Shown piece by piece: positions 1,977 to 60,690 of a stretch of 64,000 nt of DNA. The notes under the pieces were generated by a model. The model was not told the DNA's origin, did not search any database, and saw only the letters and a program-made list of their open reading frames with translations. The stretch spans positions 310,001 to 374,000 of the forward strand of contig JAMWBK010000006.1 in NCBI GenBank assembly GCA_029953675.1, written 5' to 3'. This DNA is from Rhodosorus marinus CCMP1338. Taxonomy: Eukaryota; Plantae; Rhodophyta. The position numbers and the translations under genes were made by a program. Position 1 is the stretch's first letter. The number at the start of each line of letters is the position of its first letter.

Positions 1977-3485
1977 ATGATGGTTTCCACTATCAGTGGT
2001 ATGTGCTCTGGGAAATGGCTTCCGCTCGTGTTGGTGCTATGGAGCTGCTGGGCGATAGGATCGCGTGGCGTTGAAGACCCAGGCAATCAGTCTGTTGAGG
2101 ACTTGGATAGGTTGGGGGCCGATTTGGATGAAAAGACGGCGCAGATCGAGCTGGAGTTGGTGGAGCTGGAGAAACAATATGCTGAGATGGCGCAGAATGA
2201 GACTAAAATAGAAACTGACTTGGAGGGAGCGACAAAGCTCAAGGACCAGGAAAAGGATGAAAGGGTTGGAATGGAGGAACAGCTAAAAAAGGCGAAGAGG
2301 GAGGTCCAAGATAAGAAGGACACGATTTCAAAGCTCTCCGCACGAATTTCTGAAATTCAAAGGCAGGAAAAGTCGCTCCACGCGAAAATGATGTCACTGC
2401 TCGACACCACCAAAACAGCAGTGCGGAATATCTCAGACCCATCCTTTGCGCTTGTACTGGAGAATAATGCAAACGAATGGGGAGAGTTACCACGCTCAAT
2501 GTTTGCTCGGACGCAACGCGTCATGGGATCCGGAGTGCTTTCCCTTCCAATCCACACGAAACTTCATGATAAGGTAAGCCGTAAGACCTACACATATACA
2601 CAACGAGTCAACGGAGATCTGGAGGTATCCTGGTATGACTACTGCACTGTTTCAATTCAATAGCTTCAATTGTCATGTATTCTTCGCTCGAGCAATTCCC
2701 CCCTGGGCCGCTTGGAGAATCAAGCGTTTGTATTTCAGAAACCCCAAATCGAAACGGGCTTTGCGTTTAGAGCTCACGGTTGACTTCAGATTATTCCCAT
2801 CTACAGAAAGCCGTGGCTCCTAACCCTCCTCATGGACAATCTGTTCGACCCGTAAACTGAAAGCAGGACCGTGTTTCTGTTTTTTGTTTGATGTATGGTG
2901 CAGCTCTCTCCAACGATGAACGTAATTCTGACTGCTTTCATGCTCTATGGCGGCATTCTTGGTTTTCTCTTCGTGACCTATCGGGTGTATGCTCAACTTC
3001 AGGGGCATCTTACCATTGCGCGAATGTTGTTCGTCGCCGACTTGTTGATTGGAGCGTTTTGGCTATTCTGCACACTATTGAGGATTGTATCTAAGAGGGA
3101 CCCCCTGTACAGCTTCAACGAGAGATATGAAAACGCATTTTTCATTTTCCAGGCGATGGCTCTCGTCTTCTACATCTGTTACGTCCTTATCAGAGTGCTG
3201 ATTCTCGCGGCTAGGTTAACGATAGCCGCACTTCTCGAGCTTCTCTCCGTCATCATTATCGGCAACCACTATTACATCTTCGTCTGGCTTCCTCTAATGG
3301 TGGGCATGCCATTGACATCTACTTCGTGGACCTACTTTGCGTATTCTGTTGGGTATCTACTGATGGGATCCACAAGACTTTATGCTGCACCTACTCTCTA
3401 CGAATACGTTGCTAATTCGAGGCTCGGTTATATGCTGAAACTGAGAAAACTGGAAAAACAGCGGCTTGTTGCTGAACGTGACTAG
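1977..3485 (+). CDS. Uncharacterised membrane protein: signal peptide, long coiled coil, then several TM helices
   Basis: ORF 1962..2663 (hydrophobic leader, E/K-rich heptads) joins ORF 2895..3485 (multi-TM) through phase-0 intron 2574..2903 (AAG|GTAAGC...TGCAG|CTC), which keeps the frame. Confidence 0.7.
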
Positions 3486-4030
3486 CTGGAATTACAGTTG
3501 TGCTGTGCGGCATACTATTGAGATGAGGAGGGTAGGGTTTTGTCTCTATGGACGCGGGTGTCTGCCTATAACCTTCGAGCGAGGATAATTCCCAGTTTTC
3601 TCCGCTCGAATCCGTACTATGTTGACTTTAGACGAACTTGTTTTACTATGACCAGAATTTTACGGCCTTTTTTTATTTTCGTAAGGACGATTCCGTGCAC
3701 CTTAGAATGTGTATACAGACGTGGGGTCGAGGAAGCACATGAATAAAACTCAAGGTTAACTTGTTCTTCATCCTGGCTCGTTGAAATCCGTGCAAAACCC
3801 TCAGTACCCGTCCAAGTGTGAACTGACTCGAGCATCTTCAAATCCGGACAACCAAGGTCAAATCACGTGAGCAGCCTCTTCAGGCTGAAGCTCAACATCT
3901 TTTAGAGGGGGTTTCTAGCTGTTATGCCCTATGGATCTTCTTGATCGTAGTGCCTGTACTGCATGCACCAACTCGATAGACCAGATAAAAGCCATCGATC
4001 GAGATCTTCCCGTTGTGAAGTTCGTTCACC

Positions 4031-4836
4031 CTAGATCGGCTTAATCTTGAAGTGTAAACCAATTACGGAGAAAACAAGACATTTAAGATCTTGGACCAGG
4101 TAGTAAAACATTCGCAGGCCGGCCGGATCTTCACTGTTTTCAACATCTTGAAGTTTTCCGATTTTGGAGGCCTAGGCAAAAAAAAAAGTGGCATCCGTGC
4201 CATGTCAGGCTAATTTGATTGTCCACACCATCAACGCGAAAGAGATGGTATGGTGCTATGTGCTCACTGTAAATGATATGTGATCTTCTCCCATGACAAT
4301 CTCGAGCTCTTGTCTTCCAATTCTATCCGGTTCTGGCCAGTTGCTATCATCCAAACTAAAAGTGGTAGGAGGAAACAAGAAGAACCCTCTCAAAATAAGC
4401 TTGTTGAACGGACATCCCGCTTCCCATATTGACTGAGAAGACGAATTTGTCAGCTGTCGAGGAGATTTCTAGTGGGGTGGACATACTTCATTATATCGCT
4501 CTCCTTGATGATTCTCTTCAAGTCCCCAACTACCGCTGGCGTGACGAACACTAAGCGTCGAGTAACCAAAAAAAAACAAAAAACGAAGGAGCCATGAGAA
4601 GAGCCTCTCAGCGAACCTTTCGTTTGCATTTTCCCAAAAGCTCTTGACGCTGTGTAAAATTTGCACCACCGCCCCCGCTCACCTTCCTTTCGAATCATCC
4701 GTCCCTTCTTATAGTTGGAGTTATTCGCATACCTCATCTTACCATCCGGCCGAAACTCAAACTCAAGAAACTCATGTCCATACTCACCATTGTGGCCTAC
4801 ATAGTACCTCAAATAAAACTCCTCCCTCTCATCCAT
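4031..4836 (-). CDS. MAGO: Mago nashi (exon junction complex core), 4 exons
   Basis: [33 protein letters not shown]; [21 protein letters not shown]; [29 protein letters not shown]; [46 protein letters not shown]. Canonical GT-AG introns. Confidence 0.97.
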
Positions 4837-6547: not shown

Positions 6548-8767
6548 ATGGTAGCTGCAAAGTGTTGTGAAGAGGAGGGAGAAGGATGTGGGTGTATGGA
6601 AAATGTTGCTGAGGTAAAGCTCAAGGATGCGGCCTACGAGGTGAAGAGGAAGCGTGCAGTCTCGCAAGTTGTGTCCGACCTCATTCGCCTGCATGAGAAG
6701 GGGGATAAAATCAACGTGCAGAAGCTCAAGTCCAACGCAGCTCGTCAGCATGCGCTTCCGGATCATCCTAAGCTTACAGAAATTATCGCAGCCCTGCCAG
6801 AATCGCACATGGAGAGCCTCCTCCCCATTCTCAAAGCGAAACCGGTCAGGACAGCATCAGGAATCGCAATCGTTGCTGTGATGTCAAAGCCGCACCGGTA
6901 AACCGTGAGCAGCAAGCCTCTTCTTTCGCACGCCACTGAAGCCAAAAAGAGTCTCAAAATTTCTCTTTTCTCAACCCTTTAACAGTTGTCCACATATTGC
7001 CACAACCGGAAACATTTGTGTATACTGCCCCGGTGGCCCTGACTCTGACTTTGAATACTCCACTCAGAGTTATACAGGTTACGAACCAACGAGCATGAGG
7101 GCGATTCGGGCTCGCTATGATCCCTATGTACAGGTATATATTTCATAATCAAAAGGACCCTCATCTCAGGTTCATTAGGTCTAAAGCGTACAGTATACAC
7201 TTGCCTCGGTCAGGTTAAGAGCCGCGTAGAACAGCTACGTAGCTTGGGACACAACGTAGATAAAGTCGAATTCATCCTAATGGGAGGAACGTTTCTTTCT
7301 CTTGATACGGGCTATCGAGACTACTTTGTCAGAAACTTACACGACGCGCTGTCCGGTCATACCTCGTACTCTGTTCAGGAGGCAGTCAAGTACTCTGAGC
7401 AGAGCAACGTCAAAGTAGGGCGATCGTTTCCTTCTGTCTCAGCGGTGAAAGAGAGAGACACTTTGTATTTGAGAAACTTACGAGGAAAATTGCAAAACCG
7501 TTCTACTGACACAACAGTGTATAGGACTTACCATAGAGACCCGACCGGACTACTGTCATCGACCCCATTTGAGCTCCATGCTTGAATACGGATGCACAAG
7601 ACTAGAAATTGGAGTACAAAGCGTTTACGAGGACATTGCAAGGGATACCAATCGTGGGCACTCCGTTCAGGCAGTATGTGACTGCTTCCATTTGGCCAAA
7701 GACGCTGGCTTCAAGGTAGGACTTTTTGTCAAAAAAAAACAACGAAACCATCTGATGAAATCTACCTCTGTGTATGCTCGCTTCGGATACTTGGACTTTT
7801 AACCAACGTCTTGTTGCTTGTTTCGCGTTCACTAAAACACCCTCTGTCTCTTCACAACGCAGGTTGTGGCTCACATGATGCCGGACTTGCCTAACATGGG
7901 AATGGAGAGAGACATTGAAAGTTTCAAAGAGTTTTTTGAAAACCCTGCATTTCGACCAGACGGGTTGAAGATCTATCCTACGCTGGTGATCCGTGGAACA
8001 GGATTGTACGAGCTGTGGAAGACGAAGCGCTACCGTAACTACGCGCCAGTTGATCTAATCGACCTGATTGCCCGAGTTCTGGCGTTGGTGCCTCCCTGGA
8101 TGAGAGTCTATCGAATTCAACGAGACATTCCGATGCCGTTGGTGTCTTCTGGAGTTGAAGTTGGCAACTTGAGAGAATTGGCACTGGCGAGAGTAAGGGA
8201 GCTAGGTCTCAAATGTCGGGACGTGCGTACTCGCGAAGTTGGTATTCAGGTAAGGGAAATAGTTGGAGCGTGTCAACCAGAGTTTCAGGCCAAGCACTTA
8301 ACTCTTTTGTCTCCGTTGCCCGCGCCGTACCGTAGGACGTTCATTTCAAGATTCGTCCAGAGGAAATCGAGTTGATTAGGAGAGATTACGTCGCAAACGG
8401 CAGCTGGGAGACCTTTATAAGTTACGAGGACGCAATGCAGGATATTTTGGTTGGGTTGTTGAGGTTGCGAAAAGCTAGTGACATGGCGTTTAGGAAGGAA
8501 CTAGTTGGTACCAAGTGCTCCATCGTAAGAGAACTGCACGTTTACGGGAGCGTTGTACCAGTGCACGAGCGGGATCCGCGAAAGTTTCAGCATCAAGGCT
8601 TCGGGACCTTGCTGATGGAGGAGGCGGAAAGGATTGCAAGAGACGAGCATGGCTCCGAGAAAATGCTGGTTATATCAGGGGTTGGAACTAGGCATTACTA
8701 TAGGAAGCTGGGTTACCATCTGGAAGGTCCATATATGGTCAAATCGTTACTTGAATCTGACCATTGA
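6548..8767 (+). CDS. ELP3: Elongator complex protein 3 (radical SAM + acetyltransferase), multi-exon
   Basis: [37 protein letters not shown] (radical SAM Cys motif), [91 protein letters not shown]. Confidence 0.98.
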
Positions 8768-8862: not shown

Positions 8863-10600
8863 TTAAATATTTGTAGCTGCGACTTGATCCTCTCGACCTT
8901 CTGATTCAACTGCCGTCTTGTTGGCGTGAAATTGTGCCATGGCTTTAAAAAATGGGCTTTCCGTCAAAAGCTTCATCTCGCTTGGTCCCTGGACTGGCAC
9001 CAGATTCCACCAATCGTTCCGACCTCCAGCAGCAAGTGGGATGACGTGACAAACTTTTCTTCCGTTGATACTGGCACCAGTGTATGCTTCGTAGAGTTCT
9101 ATCAGCGTTGACTTTTGGCGCTCGAAAACTTCCATTCGCTCTTCAGCATCCGGGTAACATTTCCACTCGTTCTTCATTCGGACAGCGAATCTGTGAAGAA
9201 AGCAACGTTGAACTTGGTTCAACAGGTTCCCATCAGATAGGATCCTGAGATAGGTTGCCACTTCCTCAAACCCTAGGCCAAATGGTAGCAAGCTGTTCCC
9301 ACCATACACAATAGGGGTCTGAATCAATGGCGAGCGCCCGGATTCGCTCTTGGCAGGAGATCCTGGCTCAACGGTTTGAGAAGAGACCGAGTCTACGGTC
9401 TCAGCGGTCAGAGTTTTAACACGGTTCCTGGTACGTTGACGCCTCTTCTGCCCAAGGGCATCAGAATCTGAAGCCTCTAGCGCTTGTGTGACCTGTGAGC
9501 TTGACGGTTCTGCCCTGAGGTCTTGGACTTCGCCCTCCCCAGCGGCCAGTTGATTACCGCCTTCGTTTCTCTTAGGATGGCTGCGTCCCTCATTGGACTT
9601 TTCTGGAGCTGTTGTAATTACGTCCTCTTCAATGGGGGGGGTCTCGGATAGACTTGCGGCGCCTTTAGAATTTACACCACCGTTGCCAGCTTGTTCTGAA
9701 GATGCTTGGGTCTGGGGTTCCGAAACTGGATCCCTATATGGCCGGTTTCGAGAGGTAGCTTCTCGACTTGCGGGACCGCCATAAATTGATTGCATCAGTT
9801 CTTCCTCCGAGGGTGGATTCGCCAACATGTCTTGAACAGACTCTATTATTCGTAGGAACGCGGTGAGGTAAGTGTACTGGCATAGAACATGATACCAGGA
9901 AAGCCACTGATTACGTGGACCCACGGGAGCCGGCCTCTATGTGCATACTCATATTCGCATTCATGCCCTGGAGACGACCATCAATTTGATCTACTTCGCC
10001 GTTCAAAAGTTCCGACTGGCCTTTTCCATTAAAAGCCGAATGAAAGGATTCGAGGTCCTCGTTTCGGACGATTTCCTTATTTGCACCGCTCTCCGTACCA
10101 ACGGATTCATTAATTTTGGGCGCTCGACTACCAAGGATAGCATGCGATGACGAATCATTTTGCCCCTGCAAAATTCCGGGTCCGTCAATCCCCGAGACTC
10201 GTCTTGGTTCCGACAATATGTCCCCTCCCGTACTAGCAGTTGAGCCTAAGCGTGATTGAGAGGACAGATCATGGAAAGCAGCTCCACTGGTAGGCTCTGG
10301 AAGATGCCCACTTGTCTCCACGGCTCTGTGTCGAATTGTACTTGGATGTTCAACGCCAAGTTTTCCATGTACATAAATTTGCTCAATTTCATGCATTGAG
10401 AGCTTGGTTATTGTGGAAATGCTCGTTCTGTCTTCTTCTGACTTCATCATCCTCCGAGCCACGCACGTCATCGCTTCTTTTCGGCCTTGATACCACGCCA
10501 ATTCACACTCCTGCTGAACAACATCGGCGAGAACCTGCTGGAACTGCTTCGCAGCGGTCTTCGCAGACTGCCGGAAACTAGCAGGAAGCCCATAACCCAT
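8863..10600 (-). CDS. HNH-fold protein A: N-terminal Rpn-C-terminus-like motif, long low-complexity linker, C-terminal degenerate toxin-like HNH domain
   Basis: ORFs 9911..10600 and 8863..9924 join in frame through predicted intron 9948..9843 (A|GTATGC...TAATAG|AG). The C-terminus reads RMEVFERQKSTLIELYEAYTG..KVCHVIPLAAGGRNDWWNLVP. Additional upstream exons cannot be excluded. Confidence 0.72.
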
Positions 10601-11029
10601 CGTTCAACCACTATAAGAAAAAAAAAAGCTACCTGACCCTACTTCAAAGAGTTTGTACTATTAGTTCGAACAAGGGATTCAACCATGAAACAAAGATAAT
10701 CGTCCTTGACCTCTCTGCCCCTCTCTAGACAACCCTCCTCCTGAAAAGCACAAATTCCTTGTGTTTCGTCTATATTTATACGAACAAGCTGGGAGTAAAC
10801 CCCGTCAGAAGTTTCACACACGAATTTTTCACTTGCCTTCAAAACAAACAAAAAATTGATTCCCTGAAGGGTCATCCATCTTGACGCGACACCTTCAAGC
10901 TCGAAGCCATCGCGTTTCCCATCACGACCTATCGCGCATCGATTTCCGGTTTAAATTTCCTCTCTCGCGCCATCCATCCTAGACAGGGAACTCCTGTTAG
11001 TGTCATATGTCCAATCGATCTAAATTTTG

Positions 11030-11170
11030 CCTTGCCAAAAATAAATGGTTTTCTATATCTCATCGTGCTGAACGAAACAATTGAATATTTTATCGCAAAT
11101 ACGAACACGGGTTGAGTTTACTGTCAGGTGTGAGATACTTTTCTGTTTAGAAAGATATTTGACTGGAACA
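11030..11170. promoter_or_regulatory. AT-rich tract between the two divergent HNH genes (probable bidirectional promoter region)
   Basis: A/T-rich stretch like those lying between other divergent gene starts in the window (about 830-1450, 5850-6110, 32100-32460, 58620-58830). Function is inferred from position only. Confidence 0.35.
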
Positions 11171-11803
11171 AATCTCAGGAGGGGGGGGATGAGGGTCATG
11201 TGTTTGAAGCGATGCTTCGTAAGTTTTTGACTTCGTCTAGCGTACTCAGCCGATCACACTCGTCGCTGCCTTACTTCGGTTATGATTGTGGTACTCTGGC
11301 AATCAACGTCCCTTCAGGCGAAAACTGAGCGAATTTGACAATTTTTATTGAATCCGCGGCAATCGGATCGTAGGTTTCCTTTTGGACTGCGGCAACCGCA
11401 GCTGAGGAGGCGTGGAGAACTCTTAGAGAATAATTCAGAAATTCTCCTTAATCTCCGCGGATCCTCGACGACAACCTGCAAAATCGAGCTCAGAAAGTTC
11501 CCCGGGGGAAAACATATTTACTCAAGGAAAAAAACCGGCCCTCAGTTCCGCATAGAGCTACCTTTTTATCTTGCTGAGATTAGTTTGTCCGACTTTGACC
11601 AGCGTTCAGAGCTCACGATAACGAGTCACCAGAGTACCTGTTTTTGATGCAAAATGAGGATCGAACCGAACTCACCAACAAGAGTGGTCTTACGCCCTCG
11701 CCTTCTTGTCCGAGCGACATTTAGGTGTTGGAATGTGAACCAAGACTCCGGGAATAGAGGGTAAGGAAGAATAGCGGCATCGTAAGGGACTTGGTTTACG
11801 TGG

Positions 11804-12436
11804 ATGTCTACGAACAAGATGGTTCGCCTCAATTCACTTATGTCAACCTCCAATTTGGTCTTGGAGGCAGTGTATGCCCACAAACGTGGACAAGGATTCA
11901 GTGTTAGTGAGAAAATGTTTGAAGAGTACCTGATGAAGCTCTCGCAGAGAACCTATCTCGTTGATCATCAAGTGGAGGTGCTGATTGAGTTCAACAGATC
12001 GGCGACTTATTACTTCGCCACAGATGTAGCAGCTGTCAGGAGACAATATTACTATTCGAGGCCAAGGCTACTTCGGGAATGGGGTTTGATGCGCAGAGAA
12101 GTCGCTTTCTTTCCGTAGTATCTCAAAACGAAATTTGTTCCGTTCCCATGCGTGTGCACCAGAGTTCGAAACTGGAAGAAGCTTCGCATACTCGCATAAC
12201 TCTAAAACTCTTCGAGAACAAGGTCAAACCACATGCCATCACATAATTCCCCTCAGGGTCACTGGTCCAGCGAATGGCTTCTGGTGGAACATATGTGAGT
12301 TCTACTCTCTAGTAGTTTTCGAACTCCGACGATGACAGCTGGGCCGTGGATGACCGTGTCACGCTCTGCCGTAGGTCCCTTGACAACGAGAGATCATTCT
12401 GAGATGCATCAGCGAAGAAACGACCCTTTCCTGTGA
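11804..12436 (+). CDS. HNH endonuclease B, bacterial polymorphic-toxin-like, 3 predicted exons (about 157 aa; 5' end uncertain)
   Basis: Exons 11804..12083, 12163..12294 and 12375..12436 join through introns GTTTGA..CACCAG (79 nt) and GTGAGT..CCGTAG (80 nt). The product reads ...RRQYYYSRPRLLREWEFETGRSFAYSHNSKTLREQGQTTCHHIIPLRVTGPANGFWWNICPLTTRDHSEMHQRRNDPFL*. Confidence 0.75.
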
Positions 12437-12799
12437 TCGAGCATCAGGTCATTTCCGCCGCAAGTGCGAGGTTTGTGAAAGGCTACAACCATAAAGCTTT
12501 GCCTGTTTGATGTATTGCAAGGACTTACGGATCCAAAGGCAAAGCTGGCTAGACAAGAAACAACTAGGATAATCGGAGGTAGACACTCTGCGTTCACCCG
12601 CACTCACTCTCACAAGCGAATGAATGCTCACAGTTCAACTCCCCAGATTGCGAACAATGTTCTCCTCTATTAAACTCAATGAACGAAGTCTTGGGTTCGA
12701 AGGGATACACCCTGGGTTTTGCTTCTAGAACCTTCCCAGTACACACCAATTCCTGTTCGCCCTATGGCAATGGTTTGGACGCTAGGAACACTTGCTCAT

Positions 12800-12990
12800 T
12801 TACACAGCTCGAAGAGTTTTTGATTTTGCAAGGTAGCCTCTCAGGTTGAACTCAGGAATGGGGTCGTCAGACGAGAGGAAACGACAAAGGATTGGGTCGG
12901 AGATGGCGAGCTTAACCCGCGATTGGAGGGTCCAATCAGCCTTGTTTCGCTCAGCGAGTACGGACTCTTGGATCCATAATTTGCTACTTC
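12800..12990 (-). CDS. Probable terminal exon of an unidentified gene (upstream exons unresolved, to about 13600)
   Basis: Open, protein-like frame SKLWIQESVLAERNKADWTLQSRVKLAISDPILCRFLSSDDPIPEFNLRGYLAKSKTLRAV* preceded by a TTTCCAG acceptor. No family recognised. Confidence 0.3.
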
Positions 12991-15008
12991 TGGAAACTCA
13001 ATCGGATAGAAACAACGTATCTGACCCTCAAAAGGCACGATCGATACCAGAACAGCCCTTCTCAGCTAGCAGCCTCTCAATCTGATGCTTTCGAGCTTGA
13101 AGTTTTGACTTTCGTGAAAGACGTCTAGACAGCACGGGTCAAAGCGGCGCCCAACAGAATCGGTTAGGGGCTCTCCAGAAACAAAAAAAAAATGAACGCA
13201 GAGCCCGCAAGTTTCAGACGCGTGCTTTCCAACCTCGGCCAGCCATAATGACAACGGCCACATCTGCGGATTGGCCCAAAACAAAAACTCGCGGACGCAG
13301 AGGATTGCCAGACTTAGAAGAGTAATTCCAGCAGTCACACTGAATGTTTGGTTAACAACCACTGCGTACCACTTACGAATCTAAATGGCAGCCCTAGGCA
13401 CCCTTGACAGCAACAAAAACACTTGTCAGCATTCGTGCGAAACTCAGCAACATTGGAAAATCATTCCAGCCGAATCCAAAACGTGCACCCCTGTGGAAGG
13501 GACTGCTTCCCACGAACCTGCCAAACTCTGACGTAATTGCTGTCTCCCGTCCTGAGCTCCTCTCTGCCAACCAGGCGGTCTATTGATACGCGTGGTTGGG
13601 GTTAGTCTCGTAGAACTGACATTTCAGCTTCTCATCCAAGCCGCAGGGTGAATTACCAGATGTTAGTCGCCATCTTAGGGCTGCTTCGGCTGAAGCGAGC
13701 CCATTACAGTATCCTTAATTGGGCAGCTGCCTAATGCAGCGCACCACTAATTCGACCATCTTAGGACTGCCCGGGCTGAAGCGAACCACAGCACGATCTT
13801 CGAGCGGTGGAAGGCGACTTCACCACTGTGCCGAAGGCCAGCAATGCTGCTCTTCCACCAGCAGTACCAAATGGCAAAACAAACCGGGTGCGCCATGCCG
13901 GATTTGGGACAGATGCGCTCTGTCAGTCACTTTCTTGCGCCCTTCCAAAAAACAAACCGTTTCAATTAACCAAAAAAATCGGTTCACGGAAAGTGTCATC
14001 TTTTTTTTTCAGAAATATAGATCAGAATGGAATACATAATATTATCGAATATTTAGGACCATGAACTCAAGTTGACTTTTAGGGATAACTTATCGTACTA
14101 TGAAAATAAGAAAAAAACGTCCTCGTTTCGGGCGTGAAAAAGAGAACTTTTTTGGTTAAGGGCAAGGTTGTTTTCTCGTAGAAATTTCTTCGCCCACGCT
14201 TTTTTCTCTTTTTTGGGGGGTGGGGAGTTGGGAGGGAATTCTTTCGACGACTTAGTGTGTGGAGCCGGATGGAGCTGGTGAAGTAGGTGAGGGACGCTGA
14301 GGCATTGCTTGCAACTCATTGCTTCAGCCTCAGTAGCTGCCAGGATGATTTCGCTGGAACCCACTACGACTGCAATTCCACTAGCAGTGGAATGGGTGCG
14401 TGGCCCCATAGAACCTTAACAAGTGGGAACGAAGTTGTCGAAGACATTGGTCGCAGGGTTCACAGGCGAGTACAAACCTCGCGAGCGCATTCAACAATTT
14501 TTAGTTTTCCGAGACTTGCGGGTACGGGCGGCAAATTTTGCAGCCTTCTCGGTAGATCGCAGTCCGGTTTCCATGTCTACCTGACGTGCTGATTGTTAGG
14601 TTCTACTTTGGTGATCCGGCAAAAGGAATACTTTCTCGGTCGGAGACGCTCCTTTTTTCTAGCCTACTAGTCACCAGCTCGAAGAGAGCCTAACCAGTAG
14701 GGTCGAACTAGAGCTGCGACTACCGAATCTATTTTCCACGTGTGCTTCATGCAGTGATTGTTAAGTTCTACCAGGGTTGCGATTGAATCCGATAGTTCAG
14801 ATAAACGGAAAAACTTTCGCGGTTTTAATTATAACAATAAATACTTGTACACAGCTCGTCCTTTAGCATTTTGCGAATTTACAAGCGAACCAATACATAG
14901 AATAGCAAATCTGGGCTTGTTCGCTGTTCAAAGCTTTGTTCAATAATCCATGCTCATCTACAATCCTTGGGAAATAGGAAGTCTTCCTCACGACGCTTCC
15001 CATCACGG

Positions 15009-49871: not shown

Positions 49872-52298
<2,427 letters not shown>

Positions 52299-55257: not shown

Positions 55258-56298
55258 CTAAATGAGCAGCTCTTGGTCCATACTCGGCCTGAGCGGAAGC
55301 CCCTTCCTTGCGCCGGGCTGGCCAAGCTTAACGGAGGCTACTCGCGAGGACAATTTTAGCATTTTCCAGAGCGGAAGTGCAGAGACTAGGCCGTAGATAA
55401 TACCACCGATAAAAGCGTCTCCAGCTCCTGTTGAATCGACAACCTGGTTGACCTTCTCCGCCGGACATCTGACTAGCACAGCTTGTTCACCATCTTCAAA
55501 CTCCATCACTTTCAAATCAAGATCAGCCGTGTCATGATCTTCCGCATTTCTCTTACACATGAATAGACTTCCATCTGCTCCGAGCGTTGTTATTACAAAC
55601 TTTGCGCGCCCTAATCGAAGCAGCGAGTGCATGCCGCTATAGACATCTTCACCGAAGACTTTCGGGTATCTCTGGTTTGTGATGATGAAGTCGGCAAGAG
55701 GGAGCAGTTCACGAATATGAGGCCTGTCCTTCTCAACATCCAGAGAAATTGGAACTCCTCGTTCGATTGCTAGCTTCGCAATTTCGATCGCAGCTAATGT
55801 ATGCCTTCCGTCTAGATGCAGGTGGTCAGCCTCCTCGAGCCATTCCGACTTCACCTCCCAGGGATGTAGTTCTGAATCTGATGGTGTATGGATGCAGGTT
55901 CGAGTGCCGCCTGCTCGTTCAGTTAGGACGTATGTGAACGGAGAGTTCATGTTCTGCTGCACGATCACGTTCGAAGTATCAACGCCCTCTCCTTCAAGCT
56001 CGCTTATTATCTGCTTTCCTGTGCCATCGTCTCCAATCTTGGTGAGAATCGAGCAAGGTAGGCCAAGTCTGCTCACAGCGGTGAGGGTGTTCGCACAGTT
56101 CCCTCCTCCAGCAACTTCAAACGATACCGTGCGGATCTTGTCGTCCGGATTGGGGAACGTGTCAACTGACGCGAGCAGGTCGATCGCTGCGGCTCCGAGG
56201 CCAACCACTTTGCGGCTACGAATCTCAGCTGGGACTGCATTGTCAACCCTCTTCACAGCAACTGGCTTGCTAGTGCCCGCGGACATGACGAAAGCCAT
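55258..56298 (-). CDS. PfkB/ribokinase-family sugar kinase, probably plastid-targeted, intronless
   Basis: GGGNCANTLTAVSRLG (signature 1), VITTLGADGS, VVDSTGAGDAFIGG (signature 2); leader MAFVMSAG. Confidence 0.92.
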   Translation of the reverse strand: MAFVMSAGTSKPVAVKRVDNAVPAEIRSRKVVGLGAAAIDLLASVDTFPNPDDKIRTVSFEVAGGGNCANTLTAVSRLGLPCSILTKIGDDGTGKQIISELEGEGVDTSNVIVQQNMNSPFTYVLTERAGGTRTCIHTPSDSELHPWEVKSEWLEEADHLHLDGRHTLAAIEIAKLAIERGVPISLDVEKDRPHIRELLPLADFIITNQRYPKVFGEDVYSGMHSLLRLGRAKFVITTLGADGSLFMCKRNAEDHDTADLDLKVMEFEDGEQAVLVRCPAEKVNQVVDSTGAGDAFIGGIIYGLVSALPLWKMLKLSSRVASVKLGQPGARKGLPLRPSMDQELLI

Positions 56299-57320
56299 TT
56301 TGTCAACGCAGCTCGGAATAGATTCGCATCCGACCTTGTCGACCAGCTCAGTCAAATAGATGTTCCGCTCCAAGCCATCACTATCACCAACTTTGAGCTG
56401 AGAATGTTCTCAAGAAACAGATGCACTCACGCGCTCGACAACGCCAAAAACGGGATCCTAATACCAATCCTCAGCAGAGACCAATGCGCGCGGACAATCC
56501 TCAAGTCTCCATGTTTACCGCTCGAGATGAAACGAGAAATTTCTACTCGGCCGTTGACTGCATCGATCAATGCAGTCAACTCTCAAGATGACCATCGCGT
56601 TGGAGGGGCATTCTATAGGCGAAGCCTAGTGCAGGCCACGCTGTCGGATCGAGATCGGCGGAGTCAATAGGAGTTCGCTAAAACTTCGCGTCCCACCCAC
56701 TTGTACATGGACAATACAAACCTGTTTTCTGCGAGATTCGAAAGTGTCGCTATTGGGTGACGATGCCATCTCTTTTAAGAATCGTTAAAATACGAAACAA
56801 CTAGACGACTCCTCCTTTAAAGTGAAATTCAAAACTCCATCCAGGGTGTCTTCTTCCCAACGACTTCTGAAATCTGGCTCGATCTCGTTAAGCACCGATC
56901 GGTACGGTGACCGCTTCGATCTCGTCGAGAATTCTACGCACCGTAACTTCGTCATGATGCGATTTTGAATTTTCTGGTTTTGTGTCTATGTGGCAATGTA
57001 GTCCATCTTCTTCGCCGGCATCGCATTGGAGAAGGTGAGGTGAGGCGGTCGGCCTTTCTGTTGGAGCTAGCTGGGTGCGAAAGGGTTTGGGGAGGTTTCA
57101 CACCTCGCACGAGTGTATGAAAGCTGTGTTTGAGAGTTATTTTTTTTTTGTTTTCTCGCCGTTTGAAGAGTGATCTGTTGCTGAGATGTTGACTTCGTCA
57201 ATGTTTTGAATAGACGTTTGTTGTTGTTATTCCGTTATCGTGGCTGGTGGTGGTATTGTAGTTTTGGGGCGAGGGTAACTTTTGGTGGGAGATTTTTGCT
57301 GAAGAGATTTGGATCGACTT

Positions 57321-58945: not shown

Positions 58946-60690
58946 ATGTCTGAAATAATTGAACCGGAGGCGTTAATGATCGATGACAGTGAACGGGTTC
59001 AGCGACTTTTTGTGGGAGCAAAGTTTGAAACCCTCGAAGCCGCGAAGCTAGTTGCCGAGAAATACGAGGAGGAGTCAGGTTTCAGGCTGAAAATTGTTCA
59101 CAGCTCTAAAATTCGTGTTAGATTTGCTTGTGCACAACACTTGGATTGCCCTTTCATGGTGAATGTAGGGCGAAGAAGGAAGCACGGAGATTACGTGTTT
59201 AAGACAATTGTTACCAACCACACGGCAAAGGTACGTTTTGGTCGTATGCCTACAGATCCACAACACAATTCAAGTGCTGCATTGACCGCAGTGTTTCCCT
59301 TGTTCAGGAACGAGGGGCCCTTCCGAGGAAGAGGAGACGAGGGCTGCCTGAGATTGTACGGGAAGTTGCAAGGACAAAACCTGGCCCAGTCCTCCCCGCT
59401 GACGTAATGAAGGCCACGGCAGCCGCGAACGGTGAACCTGTACCATACATGGTCGCGTATCGAGCAATAAAAACGGCTTCGAAGGGTGAAGACGAGAAGA
59501 GAGCGAAATCGTTTCAGAGAATTATACCATACCTGAAGATGTTAGGCTCAGAGAACCCAAATAGCCGGATTGAATATGAAGTGGACTCTGAGAAGCGTCT
59601 TCTTCGAGTTTTCATCTGTTTAGGTTTCGTGAATGAAGCACTACAGAACATGCGTCCTCTGATTTCGCTGGACTCGTGCGAGTTGAATGGGAAATGGAAG
59701 GGAACAGCATACTTTGGGACCTCTCGGGCGGCCACCAACGAGGTATACCCACTTGCGTTTGCGATAATGGCGGGAAAGGAGGACGCGAGCAATTGGACAT
59801 GGTTTCTGGGAAACCTGGGTCAAGGATGTCCTCAGCTCTTGACGATGGAGAGAAGATTCGTCTTCGTTAGCGATCACGATGGGGGGAAGGTGCATGCTAT
59901 GAACGAGATTTTTCCAGAATGCCTACATACTCTTTGTGCGGCGCATCTCAAGAGCAAAGTTGAGTCAGCTTACGGAAGAGAAGTAGGCTCGAAAATTATT
60001 CAACTCGCAGGAACATTCAGCCTCTCAGAAGCGCAGGTGATCTGGGATGAGATCAATGAGCTCTCGCCGGAGGCAGTGGAGTATCTCAAGAGTATAGCTC
60101 CTGAGCAATGGCTCAGCAGCGAATGGGTCCATGATAGCAGTTTGCCCCCTCGTTTCGGGATGATTTGTTCGAACGAGAAGGAGGCAACGAGCACCTGGGT
60201 TGATCTCGCGCGAAACCGGACATGGGAGCAAGTTTTACTTGAGATACAGGACAATATTTGTTTCAGATTTGGCAATTCACGGAAAAAATACCGAGCACGT
60301 GAGTCGAGCGGGATTGTTCCGGATGTTATGAGAGCTGCCCGTGATGCTTGGGACGAGGGCGCCTCCATGTCGGTCATAGAGACCAACGAAGGTAGATTTC
60401 AGGTCAGCGAATCCCAAGATTGGTCGGGGCACATCCAGGGCATCATGAACATCGTTACACCTGCACAGGCAACGTGCACATGCGGAAAGTGGCAGGATAG
60501 ATGGTTTCCATGCGAGCACGGATGCGCGTACTTCAAACACATACGAAGAGCTGTGCATGTGAACCCGTTCGTGCATTCCCTGTACCAATTCAGTTCCGTA
60601 CGGGAGACTTTCAAAGTGAACATCAACCCTGTTGTACCAAGTATGGTTCCGTACGATCGCGAAACTAGACCCCCACCAGCAGGAATTTGA
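58946..60690 (+). mobile_element. Mutator/MuDR (MULE) transposase gene, 1 intron, no TIRs recognised (possibly domesticated)
   Basis: Phase-0 intron 59231..59307 (GTACGT..TTCAG) joins ORFs 58937 and 59407 in frame. N-terminal MuDR DNA-binding domain (VGAKF..C....DCPF..H). DDE core ISLD / VSD / CAAH / SNEKE. SWIM finger CTCGKWQDRWFPCEH. Confidence 0.9.

Follow-up and report, generated by a model that had tools for sequence, protein, structure and literature searches.

Can a complete HNH active site be hidden in a red algal genome by two short introns? The question arises at a locus of Rhodosorus marinus CCMP1338 (Rhodophyta), on contig JAMWBK010000006.1 of GenBank assembly GCA_029953675.1, where positions 310,001 to 374,000 form the window analysed here; the window is this whole stretch of 64,000 nucleotides (nt), and all coordinates below are window positions on the plus strand unless stated otherwise. 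At 11804-12436, a sequence-only reading had recognised the pieces of an HNH protein and proposed that its active site is assembled by the removal of two introns. It is likely that the locus is a real three-exon nuclear gene for an HNH protein of the type of Rhs2-CT, a bacterial toxin domain, with the splicing and history described below. One half of the proposal has been borne out directly, as intron 2 is seen to be removed in a transcript of a sister lineage, while the support for intron 1 is comparative.

The open reading frame (ORF) list of the window shows the gene as three pieces in three different plus-strand frames: 11804..12118 (104 amino acids (aa), beginning with ATG), 12135..12335 (66 aa) and 12332..12436 (34 aa). 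The ORF fragments and intron coordinates originally described match the sequence, and in-silico excision of both introns yields the predicted in-frame protein, from 474 nt that comprise 157 codons and a stop without interruption. Exon 1 (11804..12083), with an in-frame stop just 5' of its ATG, carries codons 1-93 and the first base of codon 94, and ends at the invariant W93; it encodes ~30 N-terminal residues specific to the eukaryotic proteins, followed by the helical first half of the toxin-type domain. The proposed intron 1 (12084..12162; 79 nt, phase 1, GTTTGA...CACCAG) contains an in-frame TAG at 12116-12118. Exon 2 (12163..12294) runs from the remainder of codon 94 to the first base of codon 138, and encodes EFETG, the two histidines of HHIIP (H119, 12237-12239; H120, 12240-12242) and W134-W135-N136 (12282-12290). 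After intron 2 (12295..12374; 80 nt, phase 1, GTGAGT...CCGTAG), exon 3 (12375..12436) finishes C138 and supplies P139, H145 (12395-12397), H149 (12407-12409) and the stop codon TGA (12434-12436). With junctions marked by slashes, the spliced 157-aa protein reads MSTNKMVRLN...RPRLLREW/EFETGRSF...TTCHHIIPLRVTGPANGFWWNI/CPLTTRDHSEMHQRRNDPFL, and the frame around both junctions is ...LLREW/EFETGRSF...TCHHIIPLRVTGPANGFWWNI/CPLTTRDHSEMHQRRNDPFL. The motif HHIIP...WWN...DHSEMH, which the sequence-only reading had expected, is complete in this product.

Both junctions are marked by the family to which the protein belongs. An independent hidden Markov model (HMM) was made from a distant eukaryotic orthologue (P0005) and bacterial members, with the window, its sister lineage and a paralogue in the neighbouring gene left out. 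This model matches the exon 1 fragment over profile positions 6-88, ending at the W of REW (E 1.8e-6), and the exon 2 fragment over positions 89-132, from the E of EFETG through WWNIC (E 2.1e-10). The exon 3 fragment, PLTTRDHSEMH, is matched over positions 132-147, weakly when taken alone (E 3). The three matches abut on the family model exactly at the two proposed junctions, with neither gap nor overlap, a fit beyond chance. The REWEFETG junction had been called family-typical, and indeed W stands directly before E/x..TG in all nine of the distant relatives aligned. Neither insert occurs in the syntenic orthologue or in any of the bacterial homologues. Their lengths of 79 and 80 nt fall within the local intron range of 74-141 nt, which is that of the nearby ELP3 gene (plus strand), whose introns measure 82, 74, 100, 141 and 83 nt and have the donors GTGAGC or GTAAAC, GTATAT, GTAGGG, GTAGGA and GTAAGG. 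There is no indication of an introner-like origin, as introns 1 and 2 are unlike each other and unlike the rest of the window.

Intron 2 can be settled from the sister lineage, a cluster of four sequences (the P0001 cluster) for which two contigs, L001 (from a JGI sample) and L002 (Logan), were available for comparison. One of the four sequences, P0002, is MMETSP Transcript_12356 and carries the name Rhodosorus marinus. It ends ...WWNICPMTRRDHSEIHEPGNDPFL, which is the exact product of excising the homologous 81-nt intron from L001. Intron 2 is thereby confirmed at its exact junction by an mRNA-derived sequence, and the sister-lineage orthologue is expressed. The intron is retained in three of the four sequences.

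Strains filed as Rhodosorus marinus appear to be well-diverged lineages, because a PfkB-type kinase encoded elsewhere in the window (55258-56373, minus strand) is only 90% identical to the R. marinus protein P0025 (MMETSP/UniRef), and because synonymous divergence (dS) at the HNH locus is ~0.30. The CCMP1338 assembly itself is chromosome-scale and accompanied by RNA-seq, with 31 Mb, 8,392 genes and 24,821 introns (PMC10250338).

Upstream, the sequence-only reading had placed a candidate intron in the 5' untranslated region (UTR), from GTAAGT at 11219 to a TTCAG ending at 11317. This intron is unsupported, as L001 runs through its acceptor, although L001 retains both coding introns too and may represent pre-mRNA. 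The 5' leader, judged from L001, is at least 530 nt long and holds a 99-codon TTG-initiated ORF at 11348-11647 (plus strand). This ORF is probably non-coding, because the region is rich in indels relative to the related sequences.

Intron 1 requires a closer argument. Around it there are 37 GT/GC-AG pairs that would restore the frame, so such a pair is unremarkable by itself. Among the 37, only 12084/12162 recreates EWE..TG; all the alternatives, for example 12101-12164 (which gives ...REWGLMRREFETG), disrupt the family motif and were rejected. In an AlphaFold model of the spliced protein, the W93/E94 junction falls within a confidently predicted helix (residues 75-97, pLDDT ~90), and because the junction sits inside this long helix, a native insert of 26 residues at that point would be unlikely.

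Comparison of the window with L001 and L002 adds an evolutionary test. The 471 exon nt contain no indels. Across 692 nt of non-coding sequence there are 18 events, of which one lies in the stretch proposed as intron 1 (hereafter segment 1), one in intron 2 and eight in each of two UTR stretches. If exons accumulated indels at the non-coding rate, the probability of finding none would be ~0.002, or 0.08 for exons 2 and 3 alone. The ratio of non-synonymous to synonymous divergence (dN/dS) between the window and the sister lineage is 0.41 overall (dS 0.30) and 0.38 in exons 2 and 3 (binomial p = 0.014), indicating purifying selection. By these measures segment 1 evolves as non-coding sequence does, and the exons that flank it are constrained.

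Several observations count against the removal of segment 1. It is kept in all four sister-lineage sequences (P0001-P0004), including P0002, from which intron 2 has been spliced. In that lineage segment 1 is 78 nt long, in frame and stop-free (GWYPVQSLPLARISKRILLRSPACTP), and could be translated; the window copy is one nucleotide longer, which closes the read-through frame. The donor is GTTTGA in the window and GTTGGT in the relatives, with T at position +3, a site occupied by A or G in each of the seven other introns examined. Transcript evidence for the gene comes from the sister lineage only. A collection of 5.8 billion proteins lacks both the 157-aa product and the first ORF of 104 aa. The spliced intron-1 junction was not found in a scan of metagenome contigs either, but this negative carries no weight, since a control scan for the spliced intron-2 junction was equally empty.

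These observations can be assembled into a different account, in which segment 1 is a lineage-specific coding insertion of 26 codons, the window copy is a recent pseudogene or contains an assembly error in a short run of T, and only intron 2 is real. The retention in P0001-P0004, the 79 versus 78 nt, the weak donor and the missing gene product would all be accommodated. Yet segment 1 lies exactly between the invariant W93 and E94, begins with GT and ends with AG, has the local intron length and is without a counterpart in the syntenic orthologue and all bacterial members. A coding insert would break the confident helix of the model. Segment 1 has a 1-nt indel, as do intron 2 and the UTRs, whereas the 471 exon nt have none, and the exons 3' of it are still under constraint. 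The open frame in the sister lineage is weak evidence for coding, because an intron of 78 nt would be in frame and stop-free by chance in roughly 1 case in 10, calculated as (61/64)^26 x 1/3. A coding insertion is thus an unlikely explanation, and it is similarly improbable that segment 1 is never removed and the window copy is broken or mis-assembled. We read segment 1 as a true intron, though a weak one, which is spliced inefficiently in the sister lineage at least; the comparative evidence indicates that in this alga it is probably spliced at 12084/12162. The suggestion that the weak donor acts as a splicing switch is speculation, for which the sole hint is that retained-intron sequences predominate in the sister lineage; the T at +3 is compatible with it.

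The setting of the gene answers a further question, namely whether it belongs to the algal genome at all. The 167-aa orthologue P0005 comes from L003 (Logan SRR22824290), a genomic contig of 7.3 kb on which tblastx reveals the same order and orientation as in the window: an interrupted ELP3 gene (plus), a gene of unknown kind (minus) and the HNH gene (plus). On L003 the HNH gene is a single uninterrupted ORF of 167 codons, without either insert. The synteny anchor in the window, ELP3 (6689..8755, plus strand), is a multi-exon gene with at least five introns of 74-141 nt, and the window genes, which include this gene, CDC48, ALG6/8 and the PfkB kinase, are eukaryotic. As all the non-algal homologues of the HNH protein are bacterial, bacterial contamination or a recent foreign insertion might be suspected. 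However, the locus is flanked by eukaryotic genes with introns on a contig of 2.47 Mb, its synteny is kept in two other eukaryotic lineages, a spliceosomal intron is removed from it in a poly(A) transcriptome, and the local GC content is ordinary. Contamination is effectively refuted by synteny and splicing together, and a foreign origin of the locus in either form is vanishingly improbable.

Two other genes of the window deserve mention. CDC48/p97 (49872-52292, minus strand) is a single intronless ORF of 806 codons, in contrast to ELP3 with its five or more introns. A 427-aa ORF at 59407-60690 (plus strand) carries a MULE transposase domain (E 5e-8), and possibly represents a Mutator-like element or a domesticated copy.

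Within the window, tblastn and blastn searches found no second copy or repeat of the HNH locus, and a search with the family profile gave one additional match, in the divergently transcribed gene next to it. This neighbour gene (8863..10600, minus strand) consists of two ORFs, 9911-10600 and 8863-9924, which join in frame into a protein of 551 aa upon removal of an 82-nt intron (9843..9924, minus strand; GTGGGT...AATAG). Its counterpart on L003 is a single ORF (3098-4393, minus strand); the neighbour intron is thus confined to the Rhodosorus lineage. The C-terminal ~115 residues, encoded at about 8902-9255 (minus strand) with no intron in the domain, belong to the HNH family by hhalign (probability 95.5%, E 1.6e-8; for the L003 counterpart, 97.7%, E 2e-12). 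The domain is degenerate. In the window, H119 is replaced by C, H145 by P and H149 by K (GPSEMKLL versus RDHSEMHQ), whereas on L003 the HH pair is kept and the last two histidines are lost. This domain was also not found among the 5.8 billion proteins. Since the products of both the HNH gene and its neighbour are missing from that collection, while other proteins of the same contig do occur in it, such as P0024, to which the PfkB kinase ORF is 100% identical, the source annotation probably lacks both genes. The model drawn up in the sequence-only reading therefore adds a gene apparently missing from that annotation.

What kind of HNH protein is this? When 1.84 billion representatives were searched exhaustively with phmmer, 15 matches were returned, marking a rare HNH family. 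These include the sister-lineage P0001 and the 167-aa P0005 (37% identity, E 1.8e-18), the small proteins P0008, P0011 and P0018 with hydrophobic, signal-peptide-like N-termini, P0006 from a metagenome-assembled genome of the Oligoflexales, and long polymorphic toxins with the domain at the C-terminus, such as P0009, P0014 (with a PT-TG pre-toxin region) and P0013. The gene neighbourhood of P0018 is typically bacterial. Three repetitive proteins (P0007, P0015 and P0010) aligned over short stretches alone and look like false positives. A word-indexed protein search recovered one cluster with the single sequence and five proteins with a profile. Among the bacterial relatives, P0013 is a toxin of 1,511 aa in which the domain is present as two tandem copies, and in P0017 the domain is fused to C-terminal ankyrin repeats.

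Alignments of the family define the signature F..YL...Q..L....R..F...K..LI.EW-E..TG..WP.Y....HHIIP...GP..WWNI.P....H..IH, with W93, H119, H120, G128, W134, W135, N136, P139, H145 and H149 invariant or nearly so. The algal protein possesses the whole set: the paired histidines H119-H120 within TCHHIIP and the W134-W135-N136 triplet are intact, and H145 and H149 are present only after removal of intron 2. The Pfam HNH model, PF01844, speaks less clearly for the assignment, since the algal protein scores 13.7 bits against a cut-off of 21.4 (E 0.07), which is sub-threshold and a point against it; the same model reaches E <= 0.01 in 4 of 11 aligned family sequences. By single sequence, searches of the PDB gave weak matches only, but the family profile matches 8cm0_A, the structure of Rhs2-CT, with E 6.7e-12. 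Structural comparison leads to the same protein. With an AlphaFold model of the spliced protein (pLDDT 77.4, pTM 0.71), Foldseek ranked 8cm0/9t38 best (probability 1.00; TM-score 0.62 normalised by target and 0.46 by query; 110 columns; E 0.011), with the colicin E7 DNase third, followed by weak matches to teneurin C-terminal domains.

Rhs2-CT (8CM0/9T38) is the toxin tip of Rhs2, a protein delivered by type VI secretion in Serratia marcescens Db10 (bioRxiv 10.1101/2025.10.28.685041). This metal-dependent DNase attacks both bacteria and yeasts, its expression in yeast is toxic, and the immunity protein RhsI2 neutralises it (bioRxiv 10.1101/2025.10.28.685041). Metal is bound by His1368, His1394 and His1403, and His1369 is the HNH histidine; the family has been called atypical among HNH nucleases because its metal ligands are placed on a loop, not on an alpha-helix (bioRxiv 10.1101/2025.10.28.685041). 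The algal protein shares the motif order ...EW-E..TG..WP...HHIIP..GG...WWN..P..H...H, and the 25 residues from H120 to H145 equal the spacing from His1369 to His1394. His1368, His1394, His1403 and His1369 map to H119, H145, H149 and H120, respectively. The algal gene is thus predicted to encode a stand-alone 157-aa HNH (His-Me finger) DNase of the Rhs2-CT type.

The resemblance is limited to the domain. In Serratia, the toxin forms the tip of a large Rhs/PAAR protein, from which it is cleaved; it is delivered by the type VI secretion system, has an adjacent immunity gene (rhsI2) and binds EF-Tu, while the algal protein is stand-alone, nuclear-encoded and interrupted by introns, without Rhs repeats or a detectable immunity gene, and has a shorter loop between its last two histidines. 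Similarly, the bacterial members (P0009, P0013, P0014; P0008, P0011, P0018; P0006) align over the whole ~115-aa domain at 23-32% identity, but they occur in bacterial gene contexts and have signal-peptide-like N-termini or long delivery regions, whereas the algal N-terminus is not hydrophobic. Neither a polymorphic-toxin delivery region (Rhs repeats, PAAR or PT-TG) nor a secretion signal was found in the algal protein, which has just a non-hydrophobic N-terminal extension of ~30 aa; by its sequence features, the gene would not be a polymorphic-toxin system. With PF01844 proteins and the colicin E7/E9 DNases the algal protein has in common the HH...N...H catalytic logic, its score falling below the Pfam cut-off.

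These relationships suggest a history. The HNH domain would have come from bacteria, and a duplication would have produced a head-to-head pair, consisting of a small, catalytically complete gene and a longer gene with a degenerate domain. Judged by its presence on L003, this pair appears to be older than the split from the L003 lineage. The small gene would then have gained two spliceosomal introns of ~80 nt in the Rhodosorus lineage; gain after the bacterial transfer and after the duplication is most simply inferred because both the paralogous domain and the distant syntenic orthologue are intronless. Active protein would depend on the removal of both introns. If intron 1 were retained, translation in this genome would end after 104 residues, before the active site; if intron 2 were retained, the C-terminal metal-binding residues H145 and H149 would be lost. 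In the spliced protein, H119, H145 and H149 would hold a divalent metal and H120 would act as the general base for the cleavage of DNA.

The introns could also be real in a protein that is a nuclease no longer, having become a domesticated DNA-binding or structural protein, or a functionless expressed relic. Purifying selection is only moderate (dN/dS 0.41), the neighbour paralogue demonstrates that the fold can persist without the catalytic histidines, and no immunity partner was found in the plus-strand frames of 10601-13050. Nevertheless, every catalytic and metal-binding residue of Rhs2-CT is kept in the window, in the sister lineage and in P0005, which would be unexpected if catalysis were dispensable, and loss of nuclease function is consequently very unlikely.

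Where an active DNase would be located bears on how the cell might survive it. The absence of a signal peptide, claimed in the sequence-only reading, is in line with a rough hydropathy estimate: over its most hydrophobic stretch of 10 residues, the N-terminus reaches 1.09 on the Kyte-Doolittle scale, compared with 2.5-3.0 in the homologues with signal-peptide-like N-termini, so that a classical signal peptide appears unlikely. The nucleo-cytoplasmic location deduced from this absence does not follow, however, as the N-terminus has a composition resembling that of a transit peptide. The N-terminal ~30 residues are rich in Ser and Thr, basic and devoid of acidic residues (0 acidic, 6 Ser/Thr and 2 basic among the first 20; 4 basic among the first 30), and P0005 is alike. 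The algal HNH N-terminus thus looks transit-peptide-like in composition.

Nor did an obvious antidote emerge from the plus-strand flanks. No homologue of a protein of known structure in the PDB, RhsI2 included, was found in the three plus-strand frames of 10601-13050, although immunity proteins are too variable for absence to be established in this way; the sequence 3' of the HNH gene aligns with its relatives in the manner of a UTR. Intron retention, the degenerate paralogue and compartmentation are candidate routes of self-protection. These could be combined in a self-controlled toxin module, in which the DNase is made only if the weak intron is spliced, and either the dead paralogue restrains or guides it or it is targeted to an organelle. 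Such a module is quite unlikely, but if it exists, an organelle-directed DNase of bacterial derivation could bear on the breakage or recombination of organelle DNA, on programmed cell death or on defence. The Stylonematophyceae, the class containing Rhodosorus, have minicircular mitochondrial genomes (PMC10250338).

Eukaryotes have captured bacterial toxin domains on other occasions, and the particulars are what distinguish the present case. Known captures include the C-terminal Tox-GHH domain of teneurins, which is generally thought to be domesticated and not a nuclease, and the Dae amidases of ticks and mites. As in the algal gene, a bacterial toxin domain of inter-microbial conflict has been fixed in a eukaryotic nuclear genome and has acquired introns. 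Teneurin Tox-GHH belongs to another toxin family and is part of a large surface receptor. In comparison with it and with Dae, the algal protein is small, free-standing, catalytically complete and paired with a degenerate paralogue. To our knowledge, bacterial polymorphic-toxin domains fixed in eukaryotes are few, and most of the characterised cases are inactive or have been re-purposed. Toxin-domain capture by eukaryotes is already known; the particulars here are the full catalytic set, the gain of introns after transfer and the paired dead paralogue.

At this locus a red alga has retained, with its catalytic residues complete, a DNase domain whose bacterial relative kills yeast when expressed there. 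Synteny around the gene is conserved in three or more lineages, in one of which the gene is expressed. The gene is a clear illustration of introns gained following horizontal transfer, with no introns in the distant orthologue and two in the Rhodosorus lineage. It also raises the question of how a cell could live with a non-specific DNase of its own making, if the protein has the activity that its sequence predicts.

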